DNA from: Lytechinus pictus
Taxonomy: Eukaryota
Direction: 5' to 3'
NCBI RefSeq assembly: GCF_037042905.1
Contig: NC_087258.1
Span: 14,384,001 to 14,448,000 of the forward strand
DNA length: 64,000 bases
Below the pieces are notes generated by a model. That model worked only from the letters and a program-made list of their open reading frames with translations, was not told the DNA's origin and ran no database searches. Position numbers and translations under genes: made by a program. Below are positions 18,177-49,095 of the stretch, one piece after another; the stretch's first letter is position 1, and the number at the start of each line of letters is the position of its first letter.

Positions 18177-18254
18177 AACTAAACGACATAAGGTAATTTC
18201 ATTAGTTATTTTTTTATTTGAACAAATTATTGCTATTGGTGTTGGTCCTCTTAC

Positions 18255-18474: not shown

Positions 18475-18691
18475 CTGTCATTAAACATAGCAAACATTTA
18501 CATATATTAAAAAAAATAACATCCCCTCATCAAATTCATGGGAGAGTATTATTAAGCAAAGAGTGATTTGTCACTGATAAGTTTGCTCTGAAAATGAAAA
18601 TATATTGACATCCTATAACAATATAGCTATATGAAAACACTGAAATTTTCTTTAATATGATACCCTCCCCGGTTAGGCGTTGAGTTGCGTC

Positions 18692-20100: not shown

Positions 20101-20263
20101 CAAGTATGTCGTTCTGGGGTATCCAGTCTACGATCAACGTGTTATTGCCAAGGTGACGGGGGCGTGGCCCAATATACCGCCAGATCACTCTCTGTGGAAG
20201 CTCACTGAAGACTCTGGCGAAGACCTCTGCCATATGTAATGGCACCCGCGTAAAATAAGAGCC
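20101..20263 (-). CDS. UGT: UGT common exon 3
   Basis: Acceptor CTTCTCTCGTACATCAG, donor GTAAGC, 163 nt; GSYFTRVPLHMAEVFARVFSELPQRVIWRYIGPRPRHLGNNTLIVDWIPQNDIL(G). Confidence 0.95.
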
Positions 20264-21396: not shown

Positions 21397-21453
21397 CAGT
21401 GAGAATATGATGAAACCATGTTCTCCAGATCCCTCAATAAATTCTTTGTATTT
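21397..21453 (-). CDS. UGT: UGT common exon 2
   Basis: Acceptor TCTCTCATCTTTTGTAG, donor GTAAGA, 57 nt, phase 0/0; KYKEFIEGSGEHGFIIFSL, homologous to the conserved SGEHGxVVFSLGS motif. Confidence 0.92.
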
Positions 21454-22417: not shown

Positions 22418-23269
22418 CTTGTCTAACGGTCTTGCTGGGACACCGACCGTATTTCCGATAGCTACCCAGTTGGGTGCTGTTGGGTGAGGGAAATCAAAGG
22501 CAAAGCTCGTCATGCACATCCACAACTCTGCATCTCCTACGAGCTCTTGGGTGCTTCGTCCTGGAGCAATACCATGCGCGTCCTTTATCTCGTCTAAAGC
22601 TCCGAAGTGAACCCACCCTAAAAATCTCGACACAAGGTTATGGTCCATGAAGCTGGCAACCCGCTCCAGAAACGTCATCTGATCTGATAAGGGGAGTGAA
22701 TATTGTACGTACGATGAAGGCGCTGGAATCCCGTAGAGGCGTTCGTGAAAAAGAAAATATCTCGTTGTCGTCGTCACAGCTATGTGCGGTATACCTAGGT
22801 AACTACTGAGGATCGCATCACATCCGTCAACGACATCCCCGATCAGGATATCAAAATGTGATTCCTTCAGCCGAAACAGAACAGCGGAGTCCTCAAGGAG
22901 ACTTTGGCAAGCTAACCTTATCCAAGAGTACAGTTTCCCTATATCTATCATATTACTTAACGGACCCTTCTGAAAGAAATCCTCTATCATGGTGTCCAGG
23001 GTGCCCTCGTATCCTGAAGGAACATCGAAGCGGTAGTGGAGGGCGGTGTTGTAGGTGTCCCTCGGGAAGCCTTCTGTTCCTACAAATGAGCAGGTCAGGA
23101 TGGTGACGTTGTGGCCGCGACTGCTCAATGCTCCTGTTATAGCGGACATGCTTTTAGGATGACTGGTGTATTCTGGAACTAAGACAGTAACAAGGATATT
23201 TGCAGCATTGGTCAAAGAGGTGAATGCTATAGTCAGTAACGTGAACTTGGTGAATGTTACGAGTTTCAT
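22418..23269 (-). CDS. UGT: UGT variable exon 1, copy 1 (most proximal)
   Basis: ATG, signal peptide MKLV..TNA, 284 codons ending PARPLDK, donor AAG/GTAAAC in phase 0; R70 N74 G218. Confidence 0.93.
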
Positions 23270-23370
23270 CTTGCCCGTAGCGATTCCTTGTAGATTTCAA
23301 TTGTATATTATGAGTGGCATTCTTTAAATCATGCCAATCCACCGAACATGCCGAACAGATTGTCATCAAA

Positions 23371-23377
23371 TGAGTCA
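23371..23377. promoter_or_regulatory. AP-1 consensus ~100 bp upstream of the exon-1 ATG, present in every unit
   Basis: TGAGTCA is kept even in the diverged upstream flank of copy 10; a 7-mer match only. Confidence 0.25.
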
Positions 23378-23700
23378 CAGTAAAGCTCTACAGATCACTC
23401 ATTCATGTCATTATTCACTCCTTTTTTGGTTTGCAAACGTTTCCGCTGAGCCATATACATGTAGATATGCTTCAGCACCCCCGATTCCCAGGGCCATTAT
23501 GTGGAAGAGCTGTATTCACATCATATTTCTCATGCGCATGTTTTGCAAGAAAACATCTTGTTGATTGGATCGTAGACCTCTTGGTCTACGAGTAGATGGT
23601 CTAATTCTCAGGGTTAGGATTTCTTTTAACCTCCTTTTTAGTCCTTAAATATACTTTGTTATTCTGATCCGCCTTCACTCCCTTCAGTGTATGAAAAGAA

Positions 23701-24546
23701 AACAGAGGAACAGCTACAGCTGAACTATCTACAAAATCTATTTATCATGCATTGAAACGCTGATTGAACAGTTATTATTCATCATTTCCTTCATTCTGGC
23801 ATGAAAATGGAATTATCTCAAGTAGCAAGAAAATAAACTGGACAGAAATATATGCCCCACCAAAGATAAAAAAGGGCGGAGACACACAATATAAGCTACT
23901 CCACAATGTTTGCCATCTTTACCAGTTCTTCACCATTTTAACAAGGACATTCCGATACAGTTCAGATGGTGCTTTGAGACTGGGACCATCATCCATCTAT
24001 TCATACAGTGCCCGGCCATCCAGTAATCCCTCAACGTTTTACATCGTCTGATTCACCGACTCATTCCGAACATTAATATCGACTTCGATTTATACTGGGC
24101 ACTGGTTCCTCATGCTTCGGGCCGCTGCAAGGAAGCCGTGCGTTTATGTAACTTTTTGTTAATTAGTTTCAAAAGTACCATTTATTGGCTGTATCGTACT
24201 TTGAATCTTTCAGATCCCCTATTGGTTTGGAAATTCAAATTGAAAAGCATGAATTTTCTTGATTATGAGTTTTTTAAGTTACAAAATAACGATACTGCCT
24301 TCTCAAAGCGATGGTTCGTGAACAATGCCCTTTGTTCTGTCGGCACTTCTTTTGAGTTAGTTTGGTCATTTTGAATGTAGGAATGTAGGCCTACTGTTAC
24401 TTTACTGGTTGTTAAACGTTATTTCTTGGTTTGTTTTTAATGAGTCCTTATTTGTACTTACGAAGTATATTATTCTGATATTTTATTTGTATATATGTTA
24501 TAGTTTGCTTGTAAATAAAGTTTCATTTTGAAAAGTAAAAAAAAAA
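23701..24546 (+). mobile_element. Tx1-clade LINE 3' fragment with polyA, one per array junction (also from ~26310, 28883, 31453, 34024, 36595, 39166, 41740, 44348)
   Basis: Frameshifted ORF2 C-terminus WTEIYAPPKIKKGGDTQYKLLHNV/LPSLPVLHHF..WCFETGTIIHLFIQCP..FSKRWxVxNALCSV, then a T-rich UTR, AATAAA and an A-run joined to (CTT)n. Confidence 0.8.
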
Positions 24547-25029
24547 GTCTTCTTCTTCTTCTTCCTCTTCTTCTTCATGTTCTTCTTCATATCTTCTTCT
24601 TCTTCGTCGTCTTCTTCTTCTTCCTCTTCTTTTTCTTCTTAACGTTTTCTACTTTTTCGTCTTCTCCTTCCTTTCTTTTTCATTCTTCTTCTTCTTCCTA
24701 TATTTCATCTTTCTCTGTCACTTTGTATTCGGCTCCCTCAGCGCTTCGCGCAAGTCAAAAAATGAAATTGTTAATTCACGAGAATTCTGTATGTATTATT
24801 ATCATTTCGATTTCAGAATATCAATGTCGAGTCCGATACTGCATTAGGAATGTGTAGGGCCTGGAGTGTAAAATTCTTGATGGATCACAATAATCATATA
24901 GGTTTGAACTCTAGTCATATCAATTTGGAAAACTTTCATCCACACTTGCATTTGCTCCACCCACACGTGTACAGGAAAGAAAGTATGGGTATAGCCATAA
25001 GCTATGTATATACTCATCATGTAGTTTAC

Positions 25030-25881
25030 CTTGTCTAACGGTCTTGCTGGGACACCGACCGTATTTCCGATAGCTACCCAGTTGGGTGCTGTTGGGTGAG
25101 GGAAATCAAAGGCAAAGCTCGTCATGCACATCCACAACTCTGCATCTCCTACGAGCTCTTGGGTGCTTCGTCCTGGAGCAATACCATGCGCGTCCTTTAT
25201 CTCGTCTAAAGCTCCGAAGTGAACCCACTCTAAAAATCTCGACACAAGGTTATGGTCCATGAAGCTGGCAACCCGCTCCAGAAACGTCATCTGATCTGAT
25301 AAGGGGAGTGAATATTGTACGTACGATGAAGGCGCTGGAATCCCGTAGAGGCGTTCGTGAAAAAGAAAATATCTCGTTGTCGTCGTCACAGCTATGTGCG
25401 GTATACCTAGGTAACTACTGAGGATCGCATCACATCCGTCAACGACATCCCCGATCAGGATATCAAAATGTGATTCCTTCAGCCGAAACAGAACAGCGGA
25501 GTCCTCAAGGAGACTTTGGCAAGCTAACCTTATCCAAGAGTACAGTTTCCCTATATCTATCATATTACTTAACGGACCCTTCTGAAAGAAATCCTCTATC
25601 ATGGTGTCCAGGGTGCCCTCGTATCCTGAAGGAACATCGAAGCGGTAGTGGAGGGCGGTGCTGTAGGTGTCCATCGGGAAGCCTTCTGTTCCTACAAATG
25701 AGCAGGTCAGGATGGTGACGTTGTGGCCGCGACTGCTCAATGCTCCTGTTATAGCGGACATGCTTTTAGGATGACTGGTGTATTCTGGAACTAAGACAGT
25801 AACAAGGATATTTGCAGCATTGGTCAAAGAGGTGAATGCTATAGTCAGTAACGTGAACTTGGTGAATGTTACGAGTTTCAT
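25030..25881 (-). CDS. UGT: UGT variable exon 1, copy 2
   Basis: Intact 852 nt, same donor; M70 S74 E218. Confidence 0.88.
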
Positions 25882-27602
25882 CTTGCCCGTAGCGATTCCT
25901 TGTAGATTTCAATTGTATATTATGAGTGGCATTCTTTAAATCATGCCAATCCACCGAACATGCCGAACAGATTGTCATCAAATGAGTCACAGTAAAGCTC
26001 TACAGATCACTCATTCATGTCATTATTCACTCCTTTTTTGGTTTGCAAACGTTTCCGCTGAGCCATATACATGTAGATATGCTTCAGCACCCCCGATTCC
26101 CAGGGCCATGATGTGGAAGAGCTGTAATCACATCATATTTCTCATGTGCATGTTTTGCAAGAAAACATCTTGTTGATTGGATCGTAGACCTCTTGGTCTA
26201 CGAGTAGATGGTCTAATTCTCAGGGTTAGGATTTCTTTTAACCTCCTTTTTAGTCCTTAAATATACTTTATTCTGATCCGCCTTCACTCCCTTCAGTGTA
26301 TGAAAAGAAAACAGAGGAACAGCTACATCTGAACTATCTACAAAATCTATTTATCATGCATTGAAACGCTGATTGAACAGTTATTATTCATCATTTCCTT
26401 CATTCTGGCATGAAAATGGAATTATCTCAAGTAGCAAGAAAATAAACTGGACAGAAATATATGCCCCACCAAAGATAAAAAAGGGCGGAGACACACAATA
26501 TAAGCTACTCCACAATGTTTGCCATCTTTACCAGTTCTTCACCATTTTAACAAGGACATTCCGATACAGTTCAGATGGTGCTTTGAGACTGGGACCATCA
26601 TCCATCTATTCATAGTGTGCCCGGCCATCCAGTACTCCCTCAACGTTTTACATCGTCTGATTCACCGACTCATTCCGAACATTAATATCGACTTCGATTT
26701 ATACTGTGGGCACTGGTTCCTCATGCTTCGGGCCGCTGCAAGGAAGCCGTGCGTTTATGTAACTTTTTGTTAATTAGTTTCAAAAGTACCATTTATTGGC
26801 TGTATCGTACTTTGAATCTTTCAGATCCCCTATTGGTTTGGAAATCCAAATTGAAAAGTAGGAATTTTCTTGTTTATGAGTTTTTTAAGTTACAAAATAA
26901 CGATACTGCCTTCTCAAAGCGATGGTGCGTGAAAAATGCCCTTTGTTCTGTCGGCACCTCTTTGAGTTAGTTTGGTCATTTTGAATGTATGAATGTAGGC
27001 CTACTGTAACTTTACTGGTTGTTTGACGTTATTTCTTGGTTTGTTTTTAATGAGTCCTTATTTGTACTTACGAAGTATATTATTCTGATATTTTATTTGA
27101 ATATATGTTATAGTTTGCTTGTAAATAAAGTTTCATTTTGAAAAGTCAAAAAAAGTCTTCTTCTTCTTCTTCCTCTTCTTCTTCTTCATATTTTCTTCTT
27201 CGTCTTCTTCTTGCTCTTCTTCTTATCTTTTTCTTCTTTGTCGTCTTCTTCTTCTTTTCTTTTTCATTCTTCTTCTTCCTATATTTTCATCTTTCTCTGT
27301 CACTTTCTATTCGGCTCCCTCAGCGCTTCGCGCAAATCTAAAAATGAAATTGTTAAGTCACGAGAATGTATTATTATCATTTCGATTTCAGAATATCAAT
27401 GTCGAGTCCGATACTGCATTAGGAATGTGTAGGGCCTGGAGTGTAAAATTCTTGATAGATCACAATCGATATAGGTTTGAATTCTAGTCATATCAATTTG
27501 GAAAACTTTCATCCACACTTGCATTTGCTCCACCCACACGTGTACAGGAAAGAAAGTATGGGTATAGCCATAAGCTATAGATATAATCATCATGTAGTTT
27601 AC

Positions 27603-28454
27603 CTTGTCTAACGGTCTTGCTGGGACACCGACCGTATTTCCGATAGCTACCCAGTTGGGTGCTGTTGGGTGAGGGAAATCAAAGGCAAAGCTCGTCATGC
27701 ACATCCACAACTCTGCATCTCCTACGAGCTCTTGGGTGCTTCGTCCTGGAGCAATACCATGCGCGTCCTTTATCTCGTCTAAAGCTCCGAAGTGAACCCA
27801 CCCTAAAAATCTCGACACAAGGTTATGGTCCATGAAGCTGGCAACCCGCTCCAGAAACGTCATCTGATCTGATAAGGGGAGTGAATATTGTACGTACGAT
27901 GAAGGCGCTGGAATCCCGTAGAGGCGTTCGTGAAAAAGAAAATATCTCGTTGTCGTCGTCACAGCTATGTGCGGTATACCTAGGTAACTACTGAGGATCG
28001 CATCACATCCGTCAACGACATCCCCGATCAGGATATCAAAATGTGATTCCTTCAGCCGAAACAGAACAGCGGAGTCCTCAAGGAGACTTTGGCAAGCTAA
28101 CCTTATCCAAGAGTACAGTTTCCCTATATCTATCATATTACTTAACGGACCCTTCTGAAAGAAATCCTCTATCATGGTGTCCAGGGTGCCCTCGTATCCT
28201 GAAGGAACATCGAAGCGGTAGTGGAGGGCGGTGCTGTAGGTGTCCATCGGGAAGCCTTCTGTTCCTACAAATGAGCAGGTCAGGATGGTGACGTTGTGGC
28301 CGCGACTGCTCAATGCTCCTGTTATAGCGGACATGCTTTTAGGATGACTGGTGTATTCTGGAACTAAGACAGTAACAAGGATATTTGCAGCATTGGTCAA
28401 AGAGGTGAATGCTATAGTCAGTAACGTGAACTTGGTGAATGTTACGAGTTTCAT
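27603..28454 (-). CDS. UGT: UGT variable exon 1, copy 3
   Basis: Intact 852 nt; M70 S74 G218. Confidence 0.88.
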
Positions 28455-30172
28455 CTTGCCCGTAGCGATTCCTTGTAGATTTCAATTGTATATTATGAGT
28501 GGCATTCTTTAAATCATGCCAATCCACCGAACATGCCGAACAGATTGTCATCAAATGAGTCACAGTAAAGCTCTACAGATCACTCATTCATGTCATTATT
28601 CACTCCTTTTTTGGTTTGCAAACGTTTCCGCTGAGCCATATACATGTAGATATGCTTCAGCACCCCCGATTCCCAGGGCCATGATGTGGAAGAGCTGTAA
28701 TCACATCATATTTCTCATGTGCATGTTTTGCAAGAAAACATCTTGTTGATTGGATCGTAGACCTCTTGGTCTACGAGTAGATGGTCTAATTCTCAGGGTT
28801 AGGATTTCTTTTAACCTCCTTTTTAGTCCTTAAATATACTTTATTCTGATCCGCCTTCACTCCCTTCAGTATATGAAAAGAAAACAGAGGAACAGCTACA
28901 TCTGAACTATCTACAAAATCTATTTATCATGCATTGAAACGCTGATTGAACAGTTATTATTCATCATTTCCTTCATTCTGGCATGAAAATGGAATTATCT
29001 CAAGTAGCAAGAAAATAAACTGGACAGAAATATATGCCCCACCAAAGATAAAAAAGGGCGGAGACACACAATATAAGCTACTCCACAATGTTTGCCATCT
29101 TTACCAGTTCTTCACCATTTTAACAAGGACATTCCGATACAGTTCAGATGGTGCTTTGAGACTGGGACCATCATCCATCTATTCATACAGTGCCCGGCCA
29201 TCCAGTACTCCCTCAACGTTTTACATCGTCTGATTCACCGACTCATTCCGAACATTAATATCGACTTCGATTTATACTGGGCACTGGTTCCTCATGCTTC
29301 GGGCCGCTGCAAGGAAGCCGTGCGTTTATGTAACTTTTTGTTAATTAGTTTCAAAAGTACCATTTATTGGCTGTATCGTACTTTGAATCTTTCAGATCCC
29401 CTATTGGTTTGGAATCCAAATTGAAAAGTAGGAATTTTCTTGTTTATGAGTTTTTTAAGTTACAAAATAACGATACTGCCTTCTCAAAGCGATGGTGCGT
29501 GAAAAATGCCCTTTGTTCTGTCGGCACCTCTTTGAGTTAGTTTGGTCATTTTGAATGTATGAATGTAGGCCTACTGTAACTTTACTGGTTGTTTGACGTT
29601 ATTTCTTGGTTTGTTTTTAATGAGTCCTTATTTGTACTTACGAAGTATATTATTCTGATATTTTATTTGAATATATGTTATAGTTTGCTTGTAAATAAAG
29701 TTTCATTTTGAAAAGTCAAAAAAAGTCTTCTTCTTCTTCTTCCTCTTCTTCTTCTTCATATTTTCTTCTTCGTCTTCTTCTTGCTCTTCTTCTTATCTTT
29801 TTCTTCTTTGTCGTCTTCTTCTTCTTTTCTTTTTCATTCTTCTTCTTCCTATATTTTCATCTTTCTCTGTCACTTTGTATTCGGCTCCCTCAGCGCTTCG
29901 CGCAAATCTAAAAATGAAATTGTTAAGTCACGAGAATGTATTATTATCATTTCGATTTCAGAATATCAATGTCGAGTCCGATACTGCATTAGGAATGTGT
30001 AGGGCCTGGAGTGTAAAATTATTGATAGATCACAATCGATATAGGTTTGAATTCTAGTCATATCAATTTGGAAAACTTTCATCCACACTTGCATTTGCTC
30101 CACCCACACGTGTACAGGAAAGAAAGTATGGGTATAGCCATAAGCTATAGATATAATCATCATGTAGTTTAC

Positions 30173-31024
30173 CTTGTCTAACGGTCTTTCTGGGACACCG
30201 ACCGTATTTCCGATAGCTACCCAGTTGGGTGCTGTTGGGTGAGGGAAATCAAAGGCAAAGCTCGTCATGCACATCCACAACTCTGCATCTCCTACGAGCT
30301 CTTGGGTGCTTCGTCCTGGAGCAATACCATGCGCGTCCTTTATCTCGTCTAAAGCTCCGAAGTGAACCCACCCTAAAAATCTCGACACAAGGTTATGGTC
30401 CATGAAGCTGGCAACCCGCTCCAGAAACGTCATCTGATCTGATAAGGGGAGTGAATATTGTACGTACGATGAAGGCGCTGGAATCCCGTAGAGGCGTTCG
30501 TGAAAAAGAAAATATCTCGTTGTCGTCGTCACAGCTATGTGCGGTATACCTAGGTAACTACTGAGGATCGCATCACATCCGTCAGCGACATCCCCGATCA
30601 GGATATCAAAATGTGATTCCTTCAGCCGAAACAGAACAGCGGAGTCCTCAAGGAGACTTTGGCAAGCTTACCTTATCCAAGAGTACATTTTCCCTATATC
30701 TATCATATTACTTAACGGACCCTTCTGAAAGAAATCCTCTATCATGGAGTCCAGGGTGGCCTCGTGTCCTGAAGGAACATCGAAGCGGTACTGGAGGGCG
30801 GTGTTGTAGGTGTCCATCGGGAAGCCTTTTGTTCCTACAAATGAGCAGGTCAGGATGGTGACGTTGTAGCCGCGACTGCTCAATGCTCCTGTTATAGCGG
30901 ACATGCTTTTAGGATGACTGGTGTATTCTGGAACTAAGACAGTAACAAGGATATTTGCAGCATTGGTCAAAGAGGTGAATGCTATAGTCAGTAACGTGAA
31001 CTTGGTGAATGTTACGAGTTTCAT
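30173..31024 (-). pseudogene. UGT: UGT variable exon 1, copy 4, pseudo-exon (L119*)
   Basis: TTA>TAA at 30668-30670; otherwise carries the copy-10 variant block plus Y53 and E279. Confidence 0.88.
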
Positions 31025-32743: not shown

Positions 32744-33595
32744 CTTGTCTAACGGTCTTGCTGGGACACCGACCGTATTTCCGATAGCTACCCAGTTGGG
32801 TGCTGTTGGGTGAGGGAAATCAAAGGCAAAGCTCGTCATGCACATCCACAACTCTGCATCTCCTACGAGCTCTTGGGTGCTTCGTCCTGGAGCAATACCA
32901 TGCGCGTCCTTTATCTCGTCTAAAGCTCCGAAGTGAACCCACTCTAAAAATCTCGAGACAAGTTTATGGTCCATGAAGCTGGCAACCCGCTCCAGAAACG
33001 TCATCTGATCTGATAAGGGGAGTGAATATTGTACGTACGATGAAGGCGCTGGAATCCCGTAGAGGCGTTCGTGAAAAAGAAAATATCTCGTTGTCGTCGT
33101 CACAGCTATGTGCGGTATACCTAGGTAACTACTGAGGATCGCATCACATCCGTCAACGACATCCCCGATCAGGATATCAAAATGTGATTCCTTCAGCCGA
33201 AACAGAACAGCGGAGTCCTCAAGGAGACTTTGGCAAGCTAACCTTATCCAAGAGTACAGTTTCCCTATATCTATCATATTACTTAACGGACCCTTCTGAA
33301 AGAAATCCTCTATCATGGTGTCCAGGGTGCCCTCGTATCCTGAAGGAACATCGAAGCGGTAGTGGAGGGCGGTGCTGTAGGTGTCCATCGGGAAGCCTTC
33401 TGTTCCTACAAATGAGCAGGTCAGGATGGTGACGTTGTGGCCGCGACTGCTCAATGCTCCTGTTATAGCGGACATGCTTTTAGGATGACTGGTGTATTCT
33501 GGAACTAAGACAGTAACAAGGATATTTGCAGCATTGGTCAAAGAGGTGAATGCTATAGTCAGTAACGTGAACTTGGTGAATGTTACGAGTTTCAT
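32744..33595 (-). CDS. UGT: UGT variable exon 1, copy 5
   Basis: Intact 852 nt; M70 S74 K211 E218. Confidence 0.88.
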
Positions 33596-35314: not shown

Positions 35315-36166
35315 CTTGTCTAACGGTCTTGCTGGGACACCGACCGTATTTCCGATAGCTACCCAGTTGGGTGCTGTTGGGTGAGGGAAATCAAAGGCAA
35401 AGCTCGTCATGCACATCCACAACTCTGCATCTCCTACGAGCTCTTGGGTGCTTCGTCCTGGAGCAATACCATGCGCGTCCTTTATCTCGTCTAAAGCTCC
35501 GAAGTGAACCCACTCTAAAAATCTCGACACAAGGTTATGGTCCATGAAGCTGGCAACCCGCTCCAGAAACGTCATCTGATCTGATAAGGGGAGTGAATAT
35601 TGTACGTACGATGAAGGCGCTGGAATCCCGTAGAGGCGTTCGTGAAAAAGAAAATATCTCGTTGTCGTCGTCACAGCTATGTGCGGTATACCTAGGTAAC
35701 TACTGAGGATCGCATCACATCCGTCAACGACATCCCCGATCAGGATATCAAAATGTGATTCCTTCAGCCGAAACAGAACAGCGGAGTCCTCAAGGAGACT
35801 TTGGAAAGCTAACCTTATCCAAGAGTACAGTTTCCCTATATCTATCATATTACTTAACGGACCCTTCTGAAAGAAATCCTCTATCATGGTGTCCAGGGTG
35901 CCCTCGTATCCTGAAGGAACATCGAAGCGGTAGTGGAGGGCGGTGCTGTAGGTGTCCATCGGGAAGCCTTCTGTTCCTACAAATGAGCAGGTCAGGATGG
36001 TGACGTTGTGGCCGCGACTGCTCAATGCTCCTGTTATAGCGGACATGCTTTTAGGATGACTGGTGTATTCTGGAACTAAGACAGTAACAAGGATATTTGC
36101 AGCATTGGTCAAAGAGGTGAATGCTATAGTCAGTAACGTGAACTTGGTGAATTTTACGAGTTTCAT
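35315..36166 (-). CDS. UGT: UGT variable exon 1, copy 6
   Basis: Intact 852 nt; K5 M70 S74 F121 E218. Confidence 0.88.
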
Positions 36167-37885
36167 CTTGCCCGTAGCGATTCCTTGTAGATTTCAATTG
36201 TATATTATGAGTGGCATTCTTTAAATCATGCCAATCCACCGAACATGCCGAACAGATTGTCATCAAATGAGTCACAGTAAAGCTCTACAGATCACTCATT
36301 CATGTCATTATTCACTCCTTTTTTGGTTTGCAAACGTTTCCGCTGAGCCATATACATGTAGATATGCTTCAGCACCCCCGATTCCCAGGGCCATGATGTG
36401 GAAGAGCTGTAATCACATCATATTTATCATGTGCATGTTTTGCAAGAAAACATCTTGTTGATTGGATCGTAGACCTCTTGGTCTACGAGTAGATGGTCTA
36501 ATTCTCAGGGTTAGGATTTCTTTTAACCTCCTTTTTAGTCCTTAAATATACTTTATTCTGATCCGCCTTCACTCCCTTCAGTGTACTAAAAGAAAACAGA
36601 GGAACAGCTACATCTGAACTATCTACAAAATCTATTTATCATGCATTGAAACGCTGATTGAACAGTTATTATTCATCATTTCCTTCATTCTGGCATGAAA
36701 ATGGAATTATCTCAAGTAGCAAGAAAATAAACTGGACAGAAATATATGCCCCACCAAAGATAAAAAAGGGCGGAGACACACAATATAAGCTACTCCACAA
36801 TGTTTGCCATCTTTACCAGTTCTTCACCATTTTAACAAGGACATTCCGATACAGTTCAGATGGTGCTTTGAGACTGGGACCATCATCCATCTATTCATAC
36901 AGTGCCCGGCCATCCAGTACTCCCTCAACGTTTTACATCGTCTGATTCACCGACTCATTCCGAACATTAATATCGACTTCGATTTATACTGGGCACTGGT
37001 TCCTCATGCTTCGGGCCGCTGCAAGGAAGCCGTGCGTTTATGTAACTTTTTGTTAATTAGTTTCAAAAGTACCATTTATTGGCTGTATCGTACTTTGAAT
37101 CTTTCAGATCCCCTATTGGTTTGGAAATCCAAATTGAAAAGTAGGAATTTTCTTGTTTATGAGTTTTTTAAGTTACAAAATAACGATACTGCCTTCTCAA
37201 AGCGATGGTGCGTGAAAAATGCCCTTTGTTCTGTCGGCACCTCTTTGAGTTAGTTTGGTCATTTTGAATGTATGAATGTAGGCCTACTGTAACTTTACTG
37301 GTTGTTTGACGTTATTTCTTGGTTTGTTTTTAATGAGTCCTTATTTGTACTTACGAAGTATATTATTCTGATATTTTATTTGAATATATGTTATAGTTTG
37401 CTTGTAAATAAAGTTTCATTTTGAAAAGTCAAAAAAAGTCTTCTTCTTCTTCTTCCTCTTCTTCTTCTTCATATTTTCTTCTTCGTCTTCTTCTTGCTCT
37501 TCTTCTTATCTTTTTCTTCTTTGTCGTCTTCTTCTTCTTTTCTTTTTCATTCTTCTTCTTCCTATATTTTCATCTTTCTCTGTCACTTTGTATTCGGCTC
37601 CCTCAGCGCTTCGCGCAAATCTAAAAATGAAATTGTTAAGTCACGAGAATGTATTATTATCATTTCGATTTCAGAATATCAATGTCGAGTCCGATACTGC
37701 ATTAGGAATGTGTAGGGCCTGGAGTGTAAAATTATTGATAGATCACAATCGATATAGGTTTGAATTCTAGTCATATCAATTTGGAAAACTTTCATCCACA
37801 CTTGCATTTGCTCCACCCACACGTGTACAGGAAAGAAAGTATGGGTATAGCCATAAGCTATAGATATAATCATCATGTAGTTTAC

Positions 37886-38737
37886 CTTGTCTAACGGTCT
37901 TGCTGGGACACCGACCGTATTTCCGATAGCTACCCAGTTGGGTGCTGTTGGGTGAGGGAAATCAAAGGCAAAGCTCGTCATGCACATCCACAACTCTGCA
38001 TCTCCTACGAGCTCTTGGGTGCTTCGTCCTGGAGCAATACCATGCGCGTCCTTTATCTCGTCTAAAGCTCCGAAGTGAACCCACTCTAAAAATCTCGACA
38101 CAAGGTTATGGTCCATGAAGCTGGCAACCCGCTCCAGAAACGTCATCTGATCTGATAAGGGGAGTGAATATTGTACGTACGATGAAGGCGCTGGAATCCC
38201 GTAGAGGCGTTCGTGAAAAAGAAAATATCTCGTTGTCGTCGTCACAGCTATGTGCGGTATACCTAGGTAACTACTGAGGATCGCATCACATCCGTCAACG
38301 ACATCCCCGATCAGGATATCAAAATGTGATTCCTTCAGCCGAAACAGAACAGCGGAGTCCTCAAGGAGACTTTGGAAAGCTAACCTTATCCAAGAGTACA
38401 GTTTCCCTATATCTATCATATTACTTAACGGACCCTTCTGAAAGAAATCCTCTATCATGGTGTCCAGGGTGCCCTCGTATCCTGAAGGAACATCGAAGCG
38501 GTAGTGGAGGGCGGTGCTGTAGGTGTCCATCGGGAAGCCTTCTGTTCCTACAAATGAGCAGGTCAGGATGGTGACGTTGTGGCCGCGACTGCTCAATGCT
38601 CCTGTTATAGCGGACATGCTTTTAGGATGACTGGTGTATTCTGGAACTAAGACAGTAACAAGGATATTTGCAGCATTGGTCAAAGAGGTGAATGCTATAG
38701 TCAGTAACGTGAACTTGGTGAATTTTACGAGTTTCAT
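37886..38737 (-). CDS. UGT: UGT variable exon 1, copy 7
   Basis: Intact 852 nt; protein identical to copy 6. Confidence 0.85.
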
Positions 38738-40456
38738 CTTGCCCGTAGCGATTCCTTGTAGATTTCAATTGTATATTATGAGTGGCATTCTTTAAATCAT
38801 GCCAATCCACCGAACATGCCGAACAGATTGTCATCAAATGAGTCACAGTAAAGCTCTACAGATCACTCATTCATGTCATTATTCACTCCTTTTTTGGTTT
38901 GCAAACGTTTCCGCTGAGCCATATACATGTAGATATGCTTCAGCACCCCCGATTCCCAGGGCCATGATGTGGAAGAGCTGTAATCACATCATATTTATCA
39001 TGTGCATGTTTTGCAAGAAAACATCTTGTTGATTGGATCGTAGACCTCTTGGTCTACGAGTAGATGGTCTAATTCTCAGGGTTAGGATTTCTTTTAACCT
39101 CCTTTTTAGTCCTTAAATATACTTTATTCTGATCCGCCTTCACTCCCTTCAGTGTACTAAAAGAAAACAGAGGAACAGCTACATCTGAACTATCTACAAA
39201 ATCTATTTATCATGCATTGAAACGCTGATTGAACAGTTATTATTCATCATTTCCTTCATTCTGGCATGAAAATGGAATTATCTCAAGTAGCAAGAAAATA
39301 AACTGGACAGAAATATATGCCCCACCAAAGATAAAAAAGGGCGGAGACACACAATATAAGCTACTCCACAATGTTTGCCATCTTTACCAGTTCTTCACCA
39401 TTTTAACAAGGACATTCCGATACAGTTCAGATGGTGCTTTGAGACTGGGACCATCATCCATCTATTCATACAGTGCCCGGCCATCCAGTACTCCCTCAAC
39501 GTTTTACATCGTCTGATTCACCGACTCATTCCGAACATTAATATCGACTTCGATTTATACTGGGCACTGGTTCCTCATGCTTCGGGCCGCTGCAAGGAAG
39601 CCGTGCGTTTATGTAACTTTTTGTTAATTAGTTTCAAAAGTACCATTTATTGGCTGTATCGTACTTTGAATCTTTCAGATCCCCTATTGGTTTGGAAATC
39701 CAAATTGAAAAGTAGGAATTTTCTTGTTTATGAGTTTTTTAAGTTACAAAATAACGATACTGCCTTCTCAAAGCGATGGTGCGTGAAAAATGCCCTTTGT
39801 TCTGTCGGCACCTCTTTGAGTTAGTTTGGTCATTTTGAATGTATGAATGTAGGCCTACTGTAACTTTACTGGTTGTTTGACGTTATTTCTTGGTTTGTTT
39901 TTAATGAGTCCTTATTTGTACTTACGAAGTATATTATTCTGATATTTTATTTGAATATATGTTATAGTTTGCTTGTAAATAAAGTTTCATTTTGAAAAGT
40001 AAAAAAAAGTCTTCTTCTTCTTCTTCCTCTTCTTCTTCTTCATATTTTCTTCTTCGTCTTCTTCTTGCTCTTCTTCTTATCTTTTTCTTCTTTGTCGTCT
40101 TCTTCTTCTTTTCTTTTTCATTCTTCTTCTTCCTATATTTTCATCTTTCTCTGTCACTTTGTATTCGGCTCCCTCAGCGCTTCGCGCAAATCTAAAAATG
40201 AAATTGTTAAGTCACGAGAATGTATTATTATCATTTCGATTTCAGAATATCAATGTCGAGTCCGATACTGCATTAGGAATGTGTAGGGCCTGGAGTGTAA
40301 AATTATTGATAGATCACAATCGATATAGGTTTGAATTCTAGTCATATCAATTTGGAAAACTTTCATCCACACTTGCATTTGCTCCACCCACACGTGTACA
40401 GGAAAGAAAGTATGGGTATAGCCATAAGCTATAGATATAATCATCATGTAGTTTAC

Positions 40457-41308
40457 CTTGTCTAACGGTCTTGCTGGGACACCGACCGTATTTCCGATAG
40501 CTACCCAGTTGGGTGCTGTTGGGTGAGGGAAATCAAAGGCAAAGCTCGTCATGCACATCCACAACTCTGCATCTCCTACGAGCTCTTGGGTGCTTCGTCC
40601 TGGAGCAATACCATGCGCGTCCTTTATCTCGTCTAAAGCTCCGAAGTGAACCCACTCTAAAAATCTCGACACAAGGTTATGGTCCATGAAGCTGGCAACC
40701 CGCTCCAGAAACGTCATCTGATCTGATAAGGGGAGTGAATATTGTACGTACGATGAAGGCGCTGGAATCCCGTAGAGGCGTTCGTGAAAAAGAAAATATC
40801 TCGTTGTCGTCGTCACAGCTATGTGCGGTATACCTAGGTAACTACTGAGGATCGCATCACATCCGTCAGCGACATCCCCGATCAGGATATCAAAATGTGA
40901 TTCCTTCAGCCGAAACAGAACAGCGGAGTCCTCAAGGAGACTTTGGCAAGCTAACCTTATCCAAGAGTACAGTTTCCCTATATCTATCATATTACTTAAC
41001 GGACCCTTCTGAAAGAAATCCTCTATCATGGTGTCCAGGGTGCCCTCGTATCCTGAAGGAACATCGAAGCGGTAGTGGAGGGCGGTGTTGTAGGTGTCCC
41101 TCGGGAAGCCTTCTGTTCCTACAAATGAGCAGGTCAGGATGGTGACGTTGTGGCCGCGACTGCTCAATGCTCCTGTTATAGCGGACATGCTTTTAGGATG
41201 ACTGGTGTATTCTGGAACTAAGACAGTAACAAGGATATTTGCAGCATTGGTCAAAGAGGTGAATGCTATAGTCAGTAACGTGAACTTGGTGAATGTTACG
41301 AGTTTCAT
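40457..41308 (-). CDS. UGT: UGT variable exon 1, copy 8
   Basis: Intact 852 nt; R70 N74 A147 E218. Confidence 0.88.
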
Positions 41309-43067
41309 CTTGCCCGTAGCGATTCCTTGTAGATTTCAATTGTATATTATGAGTGGCATTCTTTAAATCATGCCAATCCACCGAACATGCCGAACAGATT
41401 GTCATCAAATGAGTCACAGTAAAGCTCTACAGATCACTCATTCATGTCATTATTCACTCCTTTTTTGGTTTGCAAACGTTTCCGCTGAGCCATATACATG
41501 TAGATATGCTTCAGCACCCCCGATTCCCAGGGCCATTATGTGGAAGAGCTGTATTCACATCATATTTCTCATGCGCATGTTTTGCAAGAAAACATCTTGT
41601 TGATTGGATCGTAGACCTCTTGGTCTACGAGTAGATGGTCTAATTCTCAGGGTTAGGATTTCTTTTAACCTCCTTTTTAGTCCTTAAATATACTTTGTTA
41701 TTCTGATCCGCCTTCACTCCCTTCAGTGTATGAAAAGAAAACAGAGGAACAGCTACAGCTGAACTATCTACAAAATCTATTTATCATGCATTGAAACGCT
41801 GATTGAACAGTTATTATTCATCATTTCCTTCATTCTGGCATGAAAATGGAATTATCTCAAGTAGCAAGAAAATAAACTGGACAGAAATATATGCCCCACC
41901 AAAGATAAAAAGGGCGGAGACACACAATATAAGCTACTCCACAATGTTTGCCATCTTTACCAGTTCTTCACCATTTTAACAAGGACATTCCGATACAGTT
42001 CAGATGGTGCTTTGAGACTGGGACCATCATCCATCTATTCATACAGTGCCCGGCCATCCAGTAATCCCTCAACGTTTTACATCGTCTGATTCACCGACTC
42101 ATTCCGAACATTAATATCGACTTCGATTTATACTGGGCACTGGTTCCTCATGCTTCGGGCCGCTGCAAGGAAGCCGTGCGTTTATGTAACTTTTTGTTAA
42201 TTAGTTTCAAAAGTACCATTTATTGGCCGTATCGTACTTTGAATCTTTCAGATCCCCTATTGGTTTGGAAATTCAAATTGAAAAGCATGAATTTTCTTGA
42301 TTATGAGTTTTTTAAGTTACAAAATAACGATACTGCCTTCTCAAAGCGATGGTTCGTGAACAATGCCCTTTGTTCTGTCGGCACTTCTTTTGAGTTAGTT
42401 TGGTCATTTTGAATGTAGGAATGTAGGCCTACTGTTACTTTACTGGTTGTTAAACGTTATTTCTTGGTTTGTTTTTAATGAGTCCTTATTTGTACTTACG
42501 AAGTATATTATTCTGATATTTTATTTGTATATATGTTATAGTTTGCTTGTAAATAAAGTTTCATTTTGAAAAGTAAAAAAAAAAGTCTTCTTCTTCTTCT
42601 TCCTCTTCTTCTTCATGTTCTTCTTCATATCTTCTTCTTCTTCGTCGTCTTCTTCTTCTTCCTCTTCTTTTTCTTCTTAACGTTTTCTACTTTTTCGTCT
42701 TCTCCTTCCTTTCTTTTTCATTCTTCTTCTTCTTCCTATATTTCATCTTTCTCTGTCACTTTGTATTCGACTCCCTCAGCGCTTCGCGCAAGTCAAAAAA
42801 TGAAATTGTTAATTCACGAGAATTCTGTATGTATTATTATCATTTCGATTTCAGAATATCAATGTCGAGTCCGATACTGCATTAGGAATGTGTAGGGCCT
42901 GGAGTGTAAAATTCTTGATGGATCACAATAATCATATAGGTTTGAACTCTAGTCATATCAATTTGGAAAACTTTCATCCACACTTGCATTTGCTCCACCC
43001 ACACGTGTACAGGAAAGAAAGTATGGGTATAGCCATAAGCTATGGATACACTCATCATGTAGTTTAC

Positions 43068-43919
43068 CTTGTCTAACGGTCTTGCTGGGACACCGACCGT
43101 ATTTCCGATAGCTACCCAGTTGGGTGCTGTTGGGTGAGGGAAATCAAAGGCAAAGCTCGTCATGCACATCCACAACTCTGCATCTCCTACGAGCTCTTGG
43201 GTGCTTCGTCCTGGAGCAATACCATGCGCGTCCTTTATCTCGTCTAAAGCTCCGAAGTGAACCCACTCTAAAAATCTCGACACAAGGTTATGGTCCATGA
43301 AGCTGGCAACCCGCTCCAGAAACGTCATCTGATCTGATAAGGGGAGTGAATATTGTACGTACGATGAAGGCGCTGGAATCCCGTAGAGGCGTTCGTGAAA
43401 AAGAAAATATCTCGTTGTCGTCGTCACAGCTATGTGCGGTATACCTAGGTAACTACTGAGGATCGCATCACATCCGTCAACGACATCCCCGATCAGGATA
43501 TCAAAATGTGATTCCTTCAGCCGAAACAGAACAGCGGAGTCCTCAAGGAGACTTTGGCAAGCTAACCTTATCCAAGAGTACAGTTTCCCTATATCTATCA
43601 TATTACTTAACGGACCCTTCTGAAAGAAATCCTCTATCATGGTGTCCAGGGTGCCCTCGTATCCTGAAGGAACATCGAAGCGGTAGTGGAGGGCGGTGCT
43701 GTAGGTGTCCATCGGGAAGCCTTTTGTTCCTACAAATGAGCAGGTCAGGATGGTGACGTTGTGGCCGCGACTGCTCAATGCTCCTGTTATAGCGGACAAG
43801 CTTTTAGGATGACTGGTGTATTCTGGAACTAAGACAGTAACAAGGATATTTGCAGCATTGGTCAAAGAGGTGAATGCTATAGTCAGTAACGTGAACTTGG
43901 TGAATGTTACGAGTTTCAT
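43068..43919 (-). CDS. UGT: UGT variable exon 1, copy 9
   Basis: Intact 852 nt; L41 K66 M70 S74 E218. Confidence 0.88.
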
Positions 43920-45638
43920 CTTGCCCGTAGCGATTCCTTGTAGATTTCAATTGTATATTATGAGTGGCATTCTTTAAATCATGCCAATCCACCGAACATG
44001 CCGAACAGATTGTCATCAAATGAGTCACAGTAAAGCTCTACAGATCACTCATTCATGTCATTATTCACTCCTTTTTTGGTTTGCAAACGTTTCCGCTGAG
44101 CCATATACATGTAGATATGCTTCAGCACCCCCGATTCCCAGGGCCATGATGTGGAAGAGCTGTAATCACATCATATTTCTCATGTGCATGTTTTGCAAGA
44201 AAACATCTTGTTGATTGGATCGTAGACCTCTTGGTCTACGAGTAGATGGTCTAATTCTCAGGGTTAGGATTTCTTTTAACCTCCTATTTAGTCCTTAAAT
44301 ATACTTTATTCTGATCCGCCTTCACTCCCTTCAGTGTATGAAAAGAAAACAGAGGAACAGCTACATCTGAACTATCTACAAAATCTATTTATCATGCATT
44401 GAAACGCTGATTGAACAGTTATTATTCATCATTTCCTTCATTCTGGCATGAAAATGGAATTATCTCAAGTAGCAAGAAAATAAACTGGACAGAAATATAT
44501 GCCCCACCAAAGATAAAAAAGGGCGGAGATACACAATATAAGTTACTCTACAATGTTTGCCATCTTTACCAGTTCTTCACCATTTTAACAAGGACATTCC
44601 GATACAGTTCAGATGGTGCTTTGAGACTGGGACCATCATCCATCTATTCATACAGTGCCCGGCCATCCAGTACTCCCTCAACGTTTTACATCGTCTGATT
44701 CACCGACTCATTCCGAACATTAATATCGACTTCGATTTATACTGGGCACTGGTTCCTCATGCTTCGGGCCGCTGCAAGGAAGCCGTGCGTTTATGTAACT
44801 TTTTGTTAATTAGTTTCAAAAGTACCATTTATTGGCTGTATCGTACTTTGAATCTTTCAGATCCCCTATTGGTTTGGAAATCCAAATTGAAAAGTAGGAA
44901 TTTTCTTGTTTATGAGTTTTTTAAGTTACAAAATAACGATACTGCCTTCTCAAAGCGATGGTGCGTGAAAAATGCCCTTTGTTCTGTCGGCACCTCTTTG
45001 AGTTAGTTTGGTCATTTTGAATGTATGAATGTAGGCCTACTGTAACTTTACTGGTTGTTTGACGTTATTTCTTGGTTTGTTTTTAATGAGTCCTTATTTG
45101 TACTTACGAAGTATATTATTCTGATATTTTATTTGAATATATGTTATAGTTTGCTTGTAAATAAAGTTTCATTTTGAAAAGTCAAAAAAAGTCTTCTTCT
45201 TCTTCTTCCTCTTCTTCTTCTTCATATTTTCTTCTTCGTCTTCTTCTTGCTCTTCTTCTTATCTTTTTCTTCTTTGTCGTCTTCTTCTTCTTTTCTTTTT
45301 CATTCTTCTTCTTCCTATATTTTCATCTTTCTCTGTCACTTTGTATTCGGCTCCCTCAGCGCTTCGCGCAAATCTAAAAATGAAATTGTTAAGTCACGAG
45401 AATGTATTATTATCATTTCGATTTCAGAATATCAATGTCGAGTCCGATACTGCATTAGGAATGTGTAGGGCCTGGAGTGTAAAATTCTTGATAGATCACA
45501 ATCGATATAGGTTTGAATTCTAGTCATATCAATTTGGAAAACTTTCATCCACACTTGCATTTGCTCCACCCACACGTGTACAGGAAAGAAAGTATGGGTA
45601 TAGCCATAAGCTATAGATATAATCATCATGTAGTTTAC

Positions 45639-46490
45639 CTTGTCTAACGGTCTTGCTGGGACACCGACCGTATTTCCGATAGCTACCCAGTTGGGTGCTG
45701 TTGGGTGAGGGAAATCAAAGGCAAAGCTCGTCATGCACATCCACAACTCTGCATCTCCTACGAGCTCTTGGGTGCTTCGTCCTGGAGCAATACCATGCGC
45801 GTCCTTTATCTCGTCTAAAGCTCCGAAGTGAACCCACCCTAAAAATCTCGACACAAGGTTATGGTCCATGAAGCTGGCAACCCGCTCCAGAAACGTCATC
45901 TGATCTGATAAGGGGAGTGAATATTGTACGTACGATGAAGGCGCTGGAATCCCGTAGAGGCGTTCGTGAAAAAGAAAATATCTCGTTGTCGTCGTCACAG
46001 CTATGTGCGGTATACCTAGGTAACTACTGAGGATCGCATCACATCCGTCAGCGACATCCCCGATCAGGATATCAAAATGTGATTCCTTCAGCCGAAACAG
46101 AACAGCGGAGTCCCCAAGGAGACTTTGGCAAGCTAACCTTATCCAAGAGTACATTTTCCCTATATCTATCATATTACTTAACGGACCCTTCTGAAAGAAA
46201 TCCTCTATCATGGAGTCCAGGGTGGCCTCGTGTCCTGAAGGAACATCGAAGCGGTACTGGAGGGCGGTGTTGTAGGTGTCCATCGGGAAGCCTTTTGTTC
46301 CTACAAATGAGCAGGTCAGGATGGTGACGTTGTGGCCGCGACTGCTCAATGCTCCTGTTATAGCGGACATGCTTTTAGGATGACTGGTGTATTCTGGAAC
46401 TAAGACAGTAACAAGGATATTTGCAGCATTGGTCAAAGAGGTGAATGCTATAGTCAGTAACATGAACTTGGTGAATGTTACGAGTTTCAT
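45639..46490 (-). CDS. UGT: UGT variable exon 1, copy 10 (most distal, unique upstream flank)
   Basis: Intact 852 nt; M10 K66 M70 Q78 H87 A89 S93 M113 G126 A147. Confidence 0.92.
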
Positions 46491-49064: not shown

Positions 49065-49095
49065 TGCACGCAGCAACCCCAGAAAACTCTTGGGG

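Follow-up and report, generated by a model that had tools for sequence, protein, structure and literature searches.

Replacement-biased variation in a young, recombining array of UDP-glycosyltransferase first exons in the sea urchin Lytechinus pictus

Vertebrate UGT1A clusters consist of tandem first exons, each encoding a whole N-terminal acceptor domain, upstream of one exon set that supplies the UDP-sugar domain and transmembrane tail (PMC1885805). This variable/constant organization of UGT genes was termed vertebrate-specific by Li & Wu 2007 (PMC1885805). Replacement-biased divergence of the variable first exons is established in vertebrates, where the N-domain segments concerned map to the acceptor pocket and are positively selected, and F153 of UGT1A1 is a predicted pocket residue (PMC1885805). 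A literature search for echinoderm UGT first-exon arrays returned nothing specific. In Lytechinus pictus, ten UGT first exons (c1–c10) were found on the minus strand of the 64,000-nucleotide stretch of DNA analyzed here (the window), arranged in tandem units of ∼2.57 kb upstream of common exons 2–5 (Table 1). As in the vertebrate clusters, each encodes the whole N-terminal acceptor domain, ends at the same point (...PL.K|E/K-Y/F-.-.F) and is followed by a single downstream set for the UDP-sugar domain and transmembrane tail. Every first exon is 852 nt long with the 3′ end AAG|GTAAAT, all ten have an intact ATG and splice donor upstream of the one constant set, and the copies are 98.4–100% identical. 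The constant exons are single-copy apart from the last, a second copy of which lies at 9654–9926. Copy c1 provides the first exon of RefSeq isoforms X1 (521 aa) and X2 and is the sole copy used by the RefSeq full-length isoforms. The echinoderm array arose independently of the vertebrate one.

Table 1. Coordinates of the first exons, shared exons, and representative spacers within the window
Feature	Positions	Strand	ATG	Characteristics	Located by
Exon 1 copy c1	22418..23269	-	23269	Closest to shared exons; R70, N74, G218	
Exon 1 copy c2	25030..25881	-	25881	Majority type, E218; then B-type spacer	
Exon 1 copy c3	27603..28454	-	28454	M70, S74, G218	
Exon 1 copy c4	30173..31024	-	31024	Pseudo-exon; c10-type block plus private H53Y, L119* (TAA), A279E	
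Exon 1 copy c5	32744..33595	-	33595	Private N211K and sole synonymous variant (nt 639, G>C)	
Exon 1 copy c6	35315..36166	-	36166	T5K, C121F	
Exon 1 copy c7	37886..38737	-	38737	Exon same as c6	
Exon 1 copy c8	40457..41308	-	41308	R70, N74, A147; B-type spacer upstream, as for c1	
Exon 1 copy c9	43068..43919	-	43919	M41L, K66; then B-type spacer	
Exon 1 copy c10	45639..46490	-	46490	Distal edge copy	
Shared exon 2	21397..21453	-		57 nt, KYKEFIEGSGEHGFIIFSL	tblastn with 523-aa homolog P0010
Shared exon 3	20099..20263	-		Limits ±2 nt	tblastn with P0010
Shared exon 4	18254..18481	-		UGT donor-binding signature region; limits approximate	tblastn with P0010
Last exon	16795..17067	-		Transmembrane tail and stop	tblastn with P0010 (17067-16798)
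A-type spacer, representative	43920..45638	-			
B-type spacer	41309..43067	-		c9-c8 interval	
B-type spacer, twin	23270-25029	-		c2-c1 interval	

The exon 1 product belongs to the UDP-glycosyltransferase GT1 family: residues 30–283 matched positions 5–262 of the 499-position Pfam profile PF00201 (UDPGT) with E = 1.5e-29. An AlphaFold2 model (pLDDT 90.8) resembled GT1 enzymes, among them OleD, GtfB, and TuUGT202A2, in Foldseek at probability 1.00, and the predicted structure is a Rossmann-like fold of the GT-B N-terminal type, in which a catalytic His follows β1 and an Asp follows β4. H37 is conserved in 57 and D145 in 46 of 69 family sequences. The downstream exons supply the donor-binding domain of the C-terminal half, which carries the UGT signature, and the transmembrane tail. 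Searching by sequence turned up no N-domain structure from an animal UGT, and the search by fold returned distant GT1 enzymes at most. In L. variegatus and S. purpuratus the closest proteins are 62–63% identical, and L011 (contig C4), the sole close paralog in this assembly, is 95% identical. The sister species has a locus of roughly 95% similarity.

As in vertebrate UGT1A, a first exon, here of c3 type, is joined to constant exon 2 in a transcript. The contigs of two RNA studies (runs X1 and X2), which report the exon type rather than the physical copy (arrays may differ between individuals), matched the c3-type exon base for base and continued from the predicted donor exactly into exon 2; the loose end of these contigs at the donor is the first 30 nt of exon 2. 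Spacer variants were also matched in the contigs, namely B-type positions 17 and 24, c2-private position 23, and position 152. No c10-type exon was found in the RNA contigs of either study. Exons of c10-like, c3-type, and c2-type sequence also occur in older RefSeq models. One such model has the c10-type haplotype with its distinctive residues, a recurrence suggesting that the isoform is stable and not decaying. The same data bear on an assembly or polishing artefact, by which the variation would consist of errors or of heterozygous alleles misplaced over a collapsed or expanded array. Units that are 98.5–100% identical, with c6 and c7 indistinguishable across the exon, lend themselves to such misplacement; the older annotation gives only three such read-through models (310–352 aa), and singletons such as E126G of c10 are provisional, P0002 having E126. 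However, random errors cannot produce shared variants, contigs of two other studies contain the c3-type exon together with several of the spacer variants, and the c10, c3, and c2 types all occur in the older models. An artefact is a very improbable source of the pattern.

Alignment of the ten exons gave 20 variable sites, 19 of them non-synonymous (including L119* in c4) and one synonymous (nt 639, GTG>GTC in c5; paralog L011 likewise has C here). These totals match the original prediction, made from the sequence by eye, and its fear that synonymous sites had been under-counted was unfounded, the full alignment adding none. Exactly 10 nucleotides differ between c1 and c10, all of them replacements, as claimed (T10M, E66K, R70M, H78Q, Y87H, G89A, T93S, L113M, E126G, and V147A), and the claimed placement of 12 of the 19 non-synonymous sites in codons 66–147 was borne out (binomial p = 0.002). 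This concentration of replacements in N-domain hypervariable segments is a further likeness to vertebrate UGT1A. If chance alone makes 73–77% of changes non-synonymous, the probability of at least 19 in 20 is 0.016–0.038, and the same exact test with the spacer substitution spectrum gave p = 0.032. Set against the differences from the closest paralog (20N:15S) in a McDonald-Kreitman-like test, the counts gave p = 0.002. Codon-model estimates of ω were 7.6 for all copies (likelihood-ratio p = 0.006) and 6.2 without c4 (p = 0.011), both under a single tree that ignores the demonstrated recombination, an assumption that fails because there are seven four-gamete violations. When changes private to the c4 pseudo-exon were removed, 16N:1S remained (p = 0.06). 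The replacement excess is real and ω is clearly not below 1; the evidence against neutrality for 19N:1S is modest.

Ten changes were private, that is, present in one copy or in the c6/c7 pair. Their ratio (9N:1S versus 7.6:2.4 expected, p = 0.27) and their rate (10/852 in the exon versus 20/1719 for private changes in the spacer, odds ratio 1.0) did not set them apart from neutral change. They include the stop L119* (c4), together with H53Y (c4) and C121F (c6 and c7), which alter columns at least 90% invariant among the 69 family sequences; Cys at 121 is conserved in 67 of the 69. Private changes look like unconstrained decay, reflecting relaxed constraint rather than adaptation, because they arise at a spacer-like rate, include a stop, and replace the near-invariant residues H53 and C121. 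A set of functional variants free of degenerative changes, with both exon types expressed, was not what was found, given the stop, H53Y, and C121F and the c10-type RNA unseen.

Exon and spacer histories disagree across the array. Copies c4 and c10 have five exclusive exon changes in common and 0 spacer changes; c4 and c5 differ at 14/852 exon positions versus 1/1718 in the spacer (p = 2e-6), and c2 and c3 at 1/852 versus 53/1719 (p = 8e-9). The A-type spacer comprises an intron-proper part (positions 1–309), a fragment of a dispersed retroelement that includes a (GAA)n tract (310–1288), and upstream-derived sequence that takes in the following copy's 5′ UTR (1289–1719); a 149-aa spacer ORF had no match in a Pfam scan. 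B-type spacers differ from the A type by 46 substitutions plus indel columns (2.7% divergence), and the differences begin 17 nt past the splice donor and stop 228 nt before the next ATG. Purifying selection was rejected as the cause of exon identity between A- and B-type units, since synonymous sites are identical too where 5.2 differences were expected (p = 0.005). The 5′ flanks of interior copies are identical; c10 alone has a distinct 5′ flank, ∼90% like the interior spacers and with 16 differences in the 134 nt before its ATG, and c1 has six private changes within its 316-nt 3′ flank. The array thus shows the marks of concerted evolution: neighboring segments with incongruent histories, site patterns produced by recombination, and edge units that have diverged. 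Gene conversion or unequal crossover therefore shuffles the units. Because the exons of c6 and c7 are identical and three upstream spacer changes are common to both, the pair would appear to descend from a recent whole-unit duplication.

The ten shared sites (10N:0S, p = 0.064) define two or three exon haplotypes: a majority type, a c10/c4 type, and a c1/c8 type. The c10 haplotype reads M10, K66, N74, Q78, H87, A89, S93, M113, G126, A147, and G218. Polarized with L011, the c10 lineage and the amplified unit each show ∼4 derived replacements and 0 synonymous changes. In the predicted fold, sites 66, 70, and 74 would lie in the loop after β2, site 78 in β3, sites 87, 89, and 93 where the following helix begins, site 113 in helix 103–126, site 147 two residues past the catalytic Asp, and E218G in helix 200–231. 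V147 is the equivalent of UGT1A1 F153 by D..C anchors, and pocket proximity was judged by topology and this single anchored equivalence. The most variable stretch of the UGT family is residues 61–120, and the shared sites have a mean column entropy of 3.46 versus 2.66 overall. Such a placement would be expected under diversifying selection, but also if the segment with the least constraint simply tolerates change.

Diversifying selection on substrate range, as the original prediction proposed, accordingly held up in part: the replacement excess favors it, half of the changes are private decay at a neutral rate and speak against it, and the remaining shared sites fit either selection or tolerance. 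In its present form, such selection on acceptor range would have fixed replacements separately in c10 and in the amplified unit after homogenization, and two isoform types would now be kept distinct despite ongoing conversion. It would account for the replacement-only shared sites with derived changes on both lineages, for a dN between c10 and c3 at four times the neutral divergence (p = 0.004), for the codon-model ω, for the clustering in segments that are pocket-mapped and positively selected in vertebrates (PMC1885805), for V147A at the F153 equivalent, and for the recurrence of the c10-type haplotype in a second RefSeq model set. Against this, the numbers are small, 10:0 by itself not reaching significance; the likelihood-ratio test takes no account of recombination, and shuffling creates homoplasy that swells the number of replacements; and the clustered sites are not independent because they fall together in one haplotype block and in the part of the family sequence under least constraint. 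Moreover, c10-type RNA is unseen in two contig sets, c4, one of the two c10-type copies, is a pseudo-exon, private changes behave neutrally, and spacers may have been homogenized later than the exon block. Diversifying selection is thus a possible but doubtful explanation. A tentative extension of similar standing is that the locus is a UGT1A-like variable-exon cluster at birth, in which selection holds 8–10 replacement-only pocket-segment differences between c10 and the amplified unit. Conversion would keep exons and proximal promoters near-identical, with c10 under its own diverged promoter, and functional diversification would, if this is true, start within ∼1% sequence divergence.

A further explanation is that nt 196–440 of c10 and c4 were converted from an unsampled diverged allele or paralog, the replacement-only pattern being chance in a short tract with ∼56 synonymous sites. 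Differences between c10 and c3 do end after nt 440, with nearly identical flanks, and conversion tracts typically have the implied length of 245–475 nt. Polymorphism is high in sea urchins, and at the 2.7% divergence of A- and B-type spacers ∼5 replacements and 1.5 synonymous changes would be expected, making 8N:0S not extreme (p ∼ 0.12). However, no donor is present in this assembly, and the tract mixes ancestral and derived states relative to L011. Paralog L011 was itself rejected as the donor because its 11 fixed differences inside nt 196–440 (nt 204–389) are all absent from c4 and c10. An imported tract is improbable, though less so than an artefact. The block was also rejected as an unconverted relic of the 10% divergence seen in the c10 5′ flank, for which a Poisson estimate gives ∼5.6 synonymous changes and 0 were seen.

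The reading placed ahead of these, at roughly even confidence, is that of a very young recombining array with ten redundant UGT first exons before one constant-exon set, in which private decay and shuffled shared haplotypes, with tolerance and small numbers, explain 19N:1S. Private changes pile up at the neutral (spacer) rate without purifying selection, such copies drifting or decaying, and gene conversion or unequal crossing-over carries shared haplotypes between units independently of spacers. The shared replacements all lie at positions free to vary across the UGT family; change tolerated in the least constrained segment, combined with small numbers, would be enough for the observed ratio, and selection on the haplotype block would be possible and not needed. 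The data themselves show the counts, the rates, the mosaic ancestry, the conservation profile, and the splicing of exon 1 to exon 2; from these we infer the neutrality of the shared sites. Several observations run against a neutral account: 19:1 is still unlikely under ω = 1 (p ∼ 0.03), with codon-model estimates well above 1; replacement divergence between c10 and c3 (10/657) exceeds the neutral value (7/1914, spacer plus synonymous sites; p = 0.004); the shared sites are 10N:0S; the c10-type haplotype recurs in an older RefSeq model; and V147A falls at the F153 equivalent.

On the favored reading, a new detoxification-gene array at ∼1% divergence would show mostly neutral decay and shuffling, with one haplotype block as a functional candidate. 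Should the block alter acceptor range, it would offer an experimental view of how small a number of residues suffices to begin a new UGT specificity and would indicate that the variable/constant layout recurs outside vertebrates; if it has no acceptor effect, the case cautions that in a young recombining array even 19 replacements to one synonymous change say little for adaptation.

Despite the shared layout, the urchin copies are 98.4–100% identical where vertebrate UGT1A first exons are ∼40–95% identical, a near-identity that marks the array as newborn. Gene conversion or unequal crossover is evident in the urchin array, unlike vertebrate Ugt1, in which little conversion was found (PMC1885805). 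One pseudo-exon, two copies changed at an invariant Cys, and a duplicated last exon also distinguish it from UGT1A. The neutral-rate private mutations, the stop, and the near-invariant replacements are reminiscent of relaxed constraint after recent tandem duplication, as in the birth-and-death of detoxification genes; unlike plain relaxed constraint, the shared block (10N:0S) is more replacement-biased than neutrality predicts (p = 0.06). Primate red/green opsins similarly combine concerted evolution with retained functional differences. Homogenized copies with a few replacement sites kept different are likewise a feature of the variable exons in protocadherin clusters (Noonan et al. 2004, cited in PMC1885805). 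As in the protocadherin and opsin cases, exon and flank genealogies conflict and edge copies are more diverged; unlike them, the urchin array is far younger, its variation is partly degenerative, and its retained differences are candidates for functional ones. In vertebrates the UGT arrays are so old that their beginnings can no longer be traced, whereas exon, spacer, and edge can still be compared site by site in the urchin.

The ten near-identical UGT first exons (c1, nearest the constant exons, to c10, distal) are spaced 2570–2612 nt from ATG to ATG, and each comprises 852 nt with the 3' end AAG/GTAAAT and encodes 284 aa that match Pfam UDPGT (PF00201, E=1.5e-29) across the N-terminal half of the profile. 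Constant exons were located by tblastn with a 523-aa homolog as query, and the remainder of the UGT was found once downstream of c1, except for the last exon, which is present in two copies. A single downstream exon set behind ten ATG exons indicates ten alternative first exons joined to shared constant exons. Between the two last exons (9654–9926 and 16795–17067) there are 3 nt differences, two of them replacements (G60S and E90D) and the third synonymous, and the blocks around these exons are 93–99.7% identical to each other. A tRNA-like (SINE-like) sequence occupies 20330–20420 on the minus strand, immediately upstream of the exon-3 acceptor. Among current RefSeq models, the full-length isoforms X1 (521 aa) and X2 (502 aa; lacks the 57-nt exon 2) use c1 only as first exon, and the other nine are annotated (22211–46490) as 345–352-aa ORFs that continue past the splice donor into intron sequence. 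The closest exon-1 paralog, L011, lies on contig C4 of the same genome; its 172 nt of retained intron start mark it as a DNA-level duplicate, and it is the apparent source of RefSeq protein XP_054753591 (211 aa).

Positions of the UGT exons, a representative spacer, and the paralogous first exon
Feature	Coordinates	Strand	Remark
c1 ATG	23269	minus	exon 1
c2 ATG	25881	minus	exon 1
c3 ATG	28454	minus	exon 1
c4 ATG	31024	minus	exon 1
c5 ATG	33595	minus	exon 1
c6 ATG	36166	minus	exon 1
c7 ATG	38737	minus	exon 1
c8 ATG	41308	minus	exon 1
c9 ATG	43919	minus	exon 1
c10 ATG	46490	minus	exon 1
Exon 2	21453-21397	minus	tblastn, 57 nt
Exon 3	20263-20099	minus	tblastn
Exon 4	18481-18254	minus	tblastn
Last exon	17067-16798	minus	tblastn
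Last exon, second copy	9926-9657	minus	tblastn
Representative spacer	43920-45638		1719 nt, three parts
L011	G000:C4:23108796-23109646		95% identical to exon 1; 1-nt deletion and in-frame stop

In a full alignment of the ten first exons, 20 sites vary: 19 differences are non-synonymous, among them L119* of c4, and the sole synonymous one is GTG>GTC at nt 639 of c5. The same counts had been reached by eye in the original prediction, and the full alignment added no synonymous site; likewise, comparison of c1 with c10 gives precisely the ten replacements listed there and no other difference. With ∼195 synonymous and ∼657 non-synonymous sites per exon, 73–77% replacements are expected at random, and the probability of at least 19 replacements in 20 is 0.016–0.038 from site counts or 0.032 with the spectrum of 72 spacer substitutions. 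A Goldman-Yang codon model gave an omega of 7.65 (2dlnL=7.46 versus omega=1, p=0.006), or 6.2 (p=0.011) without the c4 pseudo-exon, under a single tree in both cases, an assumption broken in this array that renders the test anti-conservative. Divergence from L011 is 20N:15S, against which the within-array ratio is clearly shifted (Fisher p=0.002). Purifying selection is absent among the copies; omega >1 is only suggested.

Each spacer combines intron-proper sequence (the first 309 nt), a dispersed retroelement fragment (positions 310–1288, ∼980 nt, in every spacer) that starts with a (GAA)n/(TTC)n tract and shares ∼86% identity with numerous sites across the genome (1169 first-look candidates), and a final 430 nt with similarity to the sequence upstream of c10. 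A 149-aa plus-strand ORF within the retroelement fragment had no Pfam match. The two B-type spacers (c9–c8 and c2–c1) differ from the seven A-type spacers by 46 substitutions plus indels, beginning 17 nt past the donor and stopping 228 nt short of the next ATG, and the exons beside them are nearly majority sequence despite this divergence (c2 versus c3: exon 1/852, spacer 53/1719, p=8e-9). Exons flanking A- and B-type spacers exhibit 0 synonymous differences, with 5.2 expected (p=0.005). The opposite imbalance occurs between c4 and c5, with 14/852 differences in the exon and 1/1718 in the spacer (p=2e-6). Five exclusive exon changes are common to c4 and c10, or as many as nine when non-exclusive ones are counted, all of them inside nt 196–653, and zero spacer changes are. 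Four gametes were present at seven pairs of exon sites. Edge copies of the array are more diverged: the 316 nt 3' of c1 carry six private changes, and the 5' flank of c10 matches interior spacers at 90% for 187 nt (46491–46676) before a 2.4-kb insertion. Upstream of c10, ∼2.4 kb of unrelated sequence (46677–49095) is followed by ∼100 nt at 93% (49096–49197). This upstream homology is old, and, being interrupted and diverged, it leaves the distal copy with a 5' flank unlike that of all other copies. The overall pattern bears the hallmarks of unequal crossing-over and gene conversion, with tracts spanning exon and proximal promoter; as a consequence of this shuffling, the exon variation fits no single tree and the spacers no simple clock. 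Conversion might also have imported a tract from an unsampled allele, an explanation that we regard as unlikely.

Logan contigs from RNA runs X1 and X2 (organism A, different studies) were placed on c10. In each run a single contig covered the whole exon and differed from c10 at exactly the ten c10-versus-c3 sites, identifying the expressed exon as c3-type, base for base. At the last exon base (45639, c10 coordinates) a contig continues with 30 nt identical to the start of exon 2 (21453), so exon 1 is transcribed and spliced from the predicted donor to the shared exon 2; depth was three- to six-fold higher over exon than intron. In low-depth unspliced contigs, intron variants that are B-type or private to c2 recur (spacer positions 17, 23, and 24), as does the position 152 variant, and the assembly's spacer variants are therefore real. 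Older RefSeq models contain a c10-like exon with E126 instead of G126 (XP_054768274), a c3-type exon (XP_054768275), and a c2-type exon (XP_054768276), indicating that the main haplotypes exist outside this assembly; E126G of c10 is a putative variant. No c10-type alleles were present in the X1 and X2 contigs, which drop minor variants, so that absence is unproven. Two raw RNA runs (X21 and X22) yielded zero depth over the exon. That the differences among copies are an assembly artefact is very improbable. A run X1 contig of 2116 nt with exon 1 (at 45639–46669) extends >1 kb upstream of the ATG into the spacer, which suggests read-through or pre-mRNA from upstream copies, i.e., transcription over several units. 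A second species (organism B, runs X9–X20) contains approximately one-fifth of the 31-mers from the c10 exon region, implying a putative ∼95%-similar locus; annotated proteins of that species are ≤62% identical, and the ortholog may be unannotated.

Ten changes are private to one copy or to the c6/c7 twin pair (T5K, T10M, M41L, H53Y, L119*, C121F, E126G, N211K, V213V, and A279E). They are exactly as dense as private changes in the spacers (10/852 versus 20/1719, odds ratio 1.0), and their N:S of 9:1 compares with 7.6:2.4 expected (p=0.27). In an alignment of 69 family N-domains, H53 (H in 65/69) and C121 (C in 67/69) are among the twelve columns ≥90% invariant, and A279 is also fairly conserved. 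Neutral density, neutral N:S, and hits on invariant residues together indicate that recent mutations are wholly unfiltered. The c4 copy is a pseudo-exon, and the enzymes encoded by c6 and c7 are probably impaired. We give roughly even chances to a composite explanation, in which redundant first exons decay neutrally after recent amplification and a shuffled haplotype polymorphism is confined to the family's most tolerant segment; relaxed constraint and small numbers would then account for the 19:1 ratio.

The ten sites shared by at least two copies (E66K, M70R, S74N, H78Q, Y87H, G89A, T93S, L113M, V147A, and E218G) are 10N:0S (p=0.064 under neutrality) and split the exons into a majority type, a c10/c4 type, and a c1/c8 type. 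With L011 as the reference for polarity, the majority lineage carries about four derived states (S74, H78, G89, V147) and the c10 lineage another four or so (K66, H87, S93, M113). These sites occupy high-entropy family columns (mean 3.46 bits versus 2.66 overall), and residues 61–120 are the family's most variable stretch. Twelve of the 19 replacements fall within codons 66–147, as first counted by eye, and this clustering (p=0.002) involves sites linked within one haplotype block; because codons 66–147 are also the least constrained segment, it does not separate selection from tolerance. Replacement divergence between c10 and c3 (10/657) exceeds neutral divergence in spacer plus synonymous sites (7/1914; p=0.004), a comparison valid only if spacer and exon block share a history, which is doubtful because the array is mosaic.

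A confident AlphaFold2 model of the exon-1 domain (pLDDT 90.8) matched GT1-family GT-B enzymes; no solved animal UGT N-domain was found by sequence or fold search. In the model, T5K and T10M fall within the helix of the signal peptide, residues 66, 70, and 74 in the loop after beta2, 78 in beta3, 87, 89, and 93 at the start of the helix following beta3, the 113–126 sites in a long helix (103–126), and 147 in the loop after beta4. By position, the regions after beta2 and beta3 presumably match the first two vertebrate hypervariable regions. D145-V-V-D-G-C150 aligns with the family consensus D-P-F-x-x-C, such that V147A falls on the equivalent of F153, a pocket residue of human UGT1A1, in whose numbering H39 and D151 are catalytic and C156R is a disease mutation (Li & Wu, PMC1885805). 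Positively selected vertebrate UGT sites lie in four hypervariable N-domain regions forming the acceptor pocket (PMC1885805). Topology and this one anchored residue suggest that the variable sites would be near the pocket.

Diversifying selection on substrate range, as proposed in the original prediction, stays viable for the ten shared sites, where we hold it as a tentative possibility, less probable than the composite explanation. These sites are replacement-only on both lineages, occupy segments important for acceptor choice in vertebrates, and set the distal copy, with its own diverged 5' flank, apart from the amplified unit, and the c10-type haplotype was found again in a second model set. 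Against this, the private changes are unfiltered. The observation of replacement bias is sound and its adaptive reading unproven; an imported tract and an assembly artefact both rank below these two explanations.

In vertebrates, variable/constant UGT clusters are well established, as is positive selection on the hypervariable regions that form their pocket; there, this organization was called vertebrate-specific and gene conversion was found to be rare (PMC1885805). In contrast, the Lytechinus pictus locus is an echinoderm array of independent and very recent origin in which conversion is evident, and it is a good system for testing the adaptive reading.
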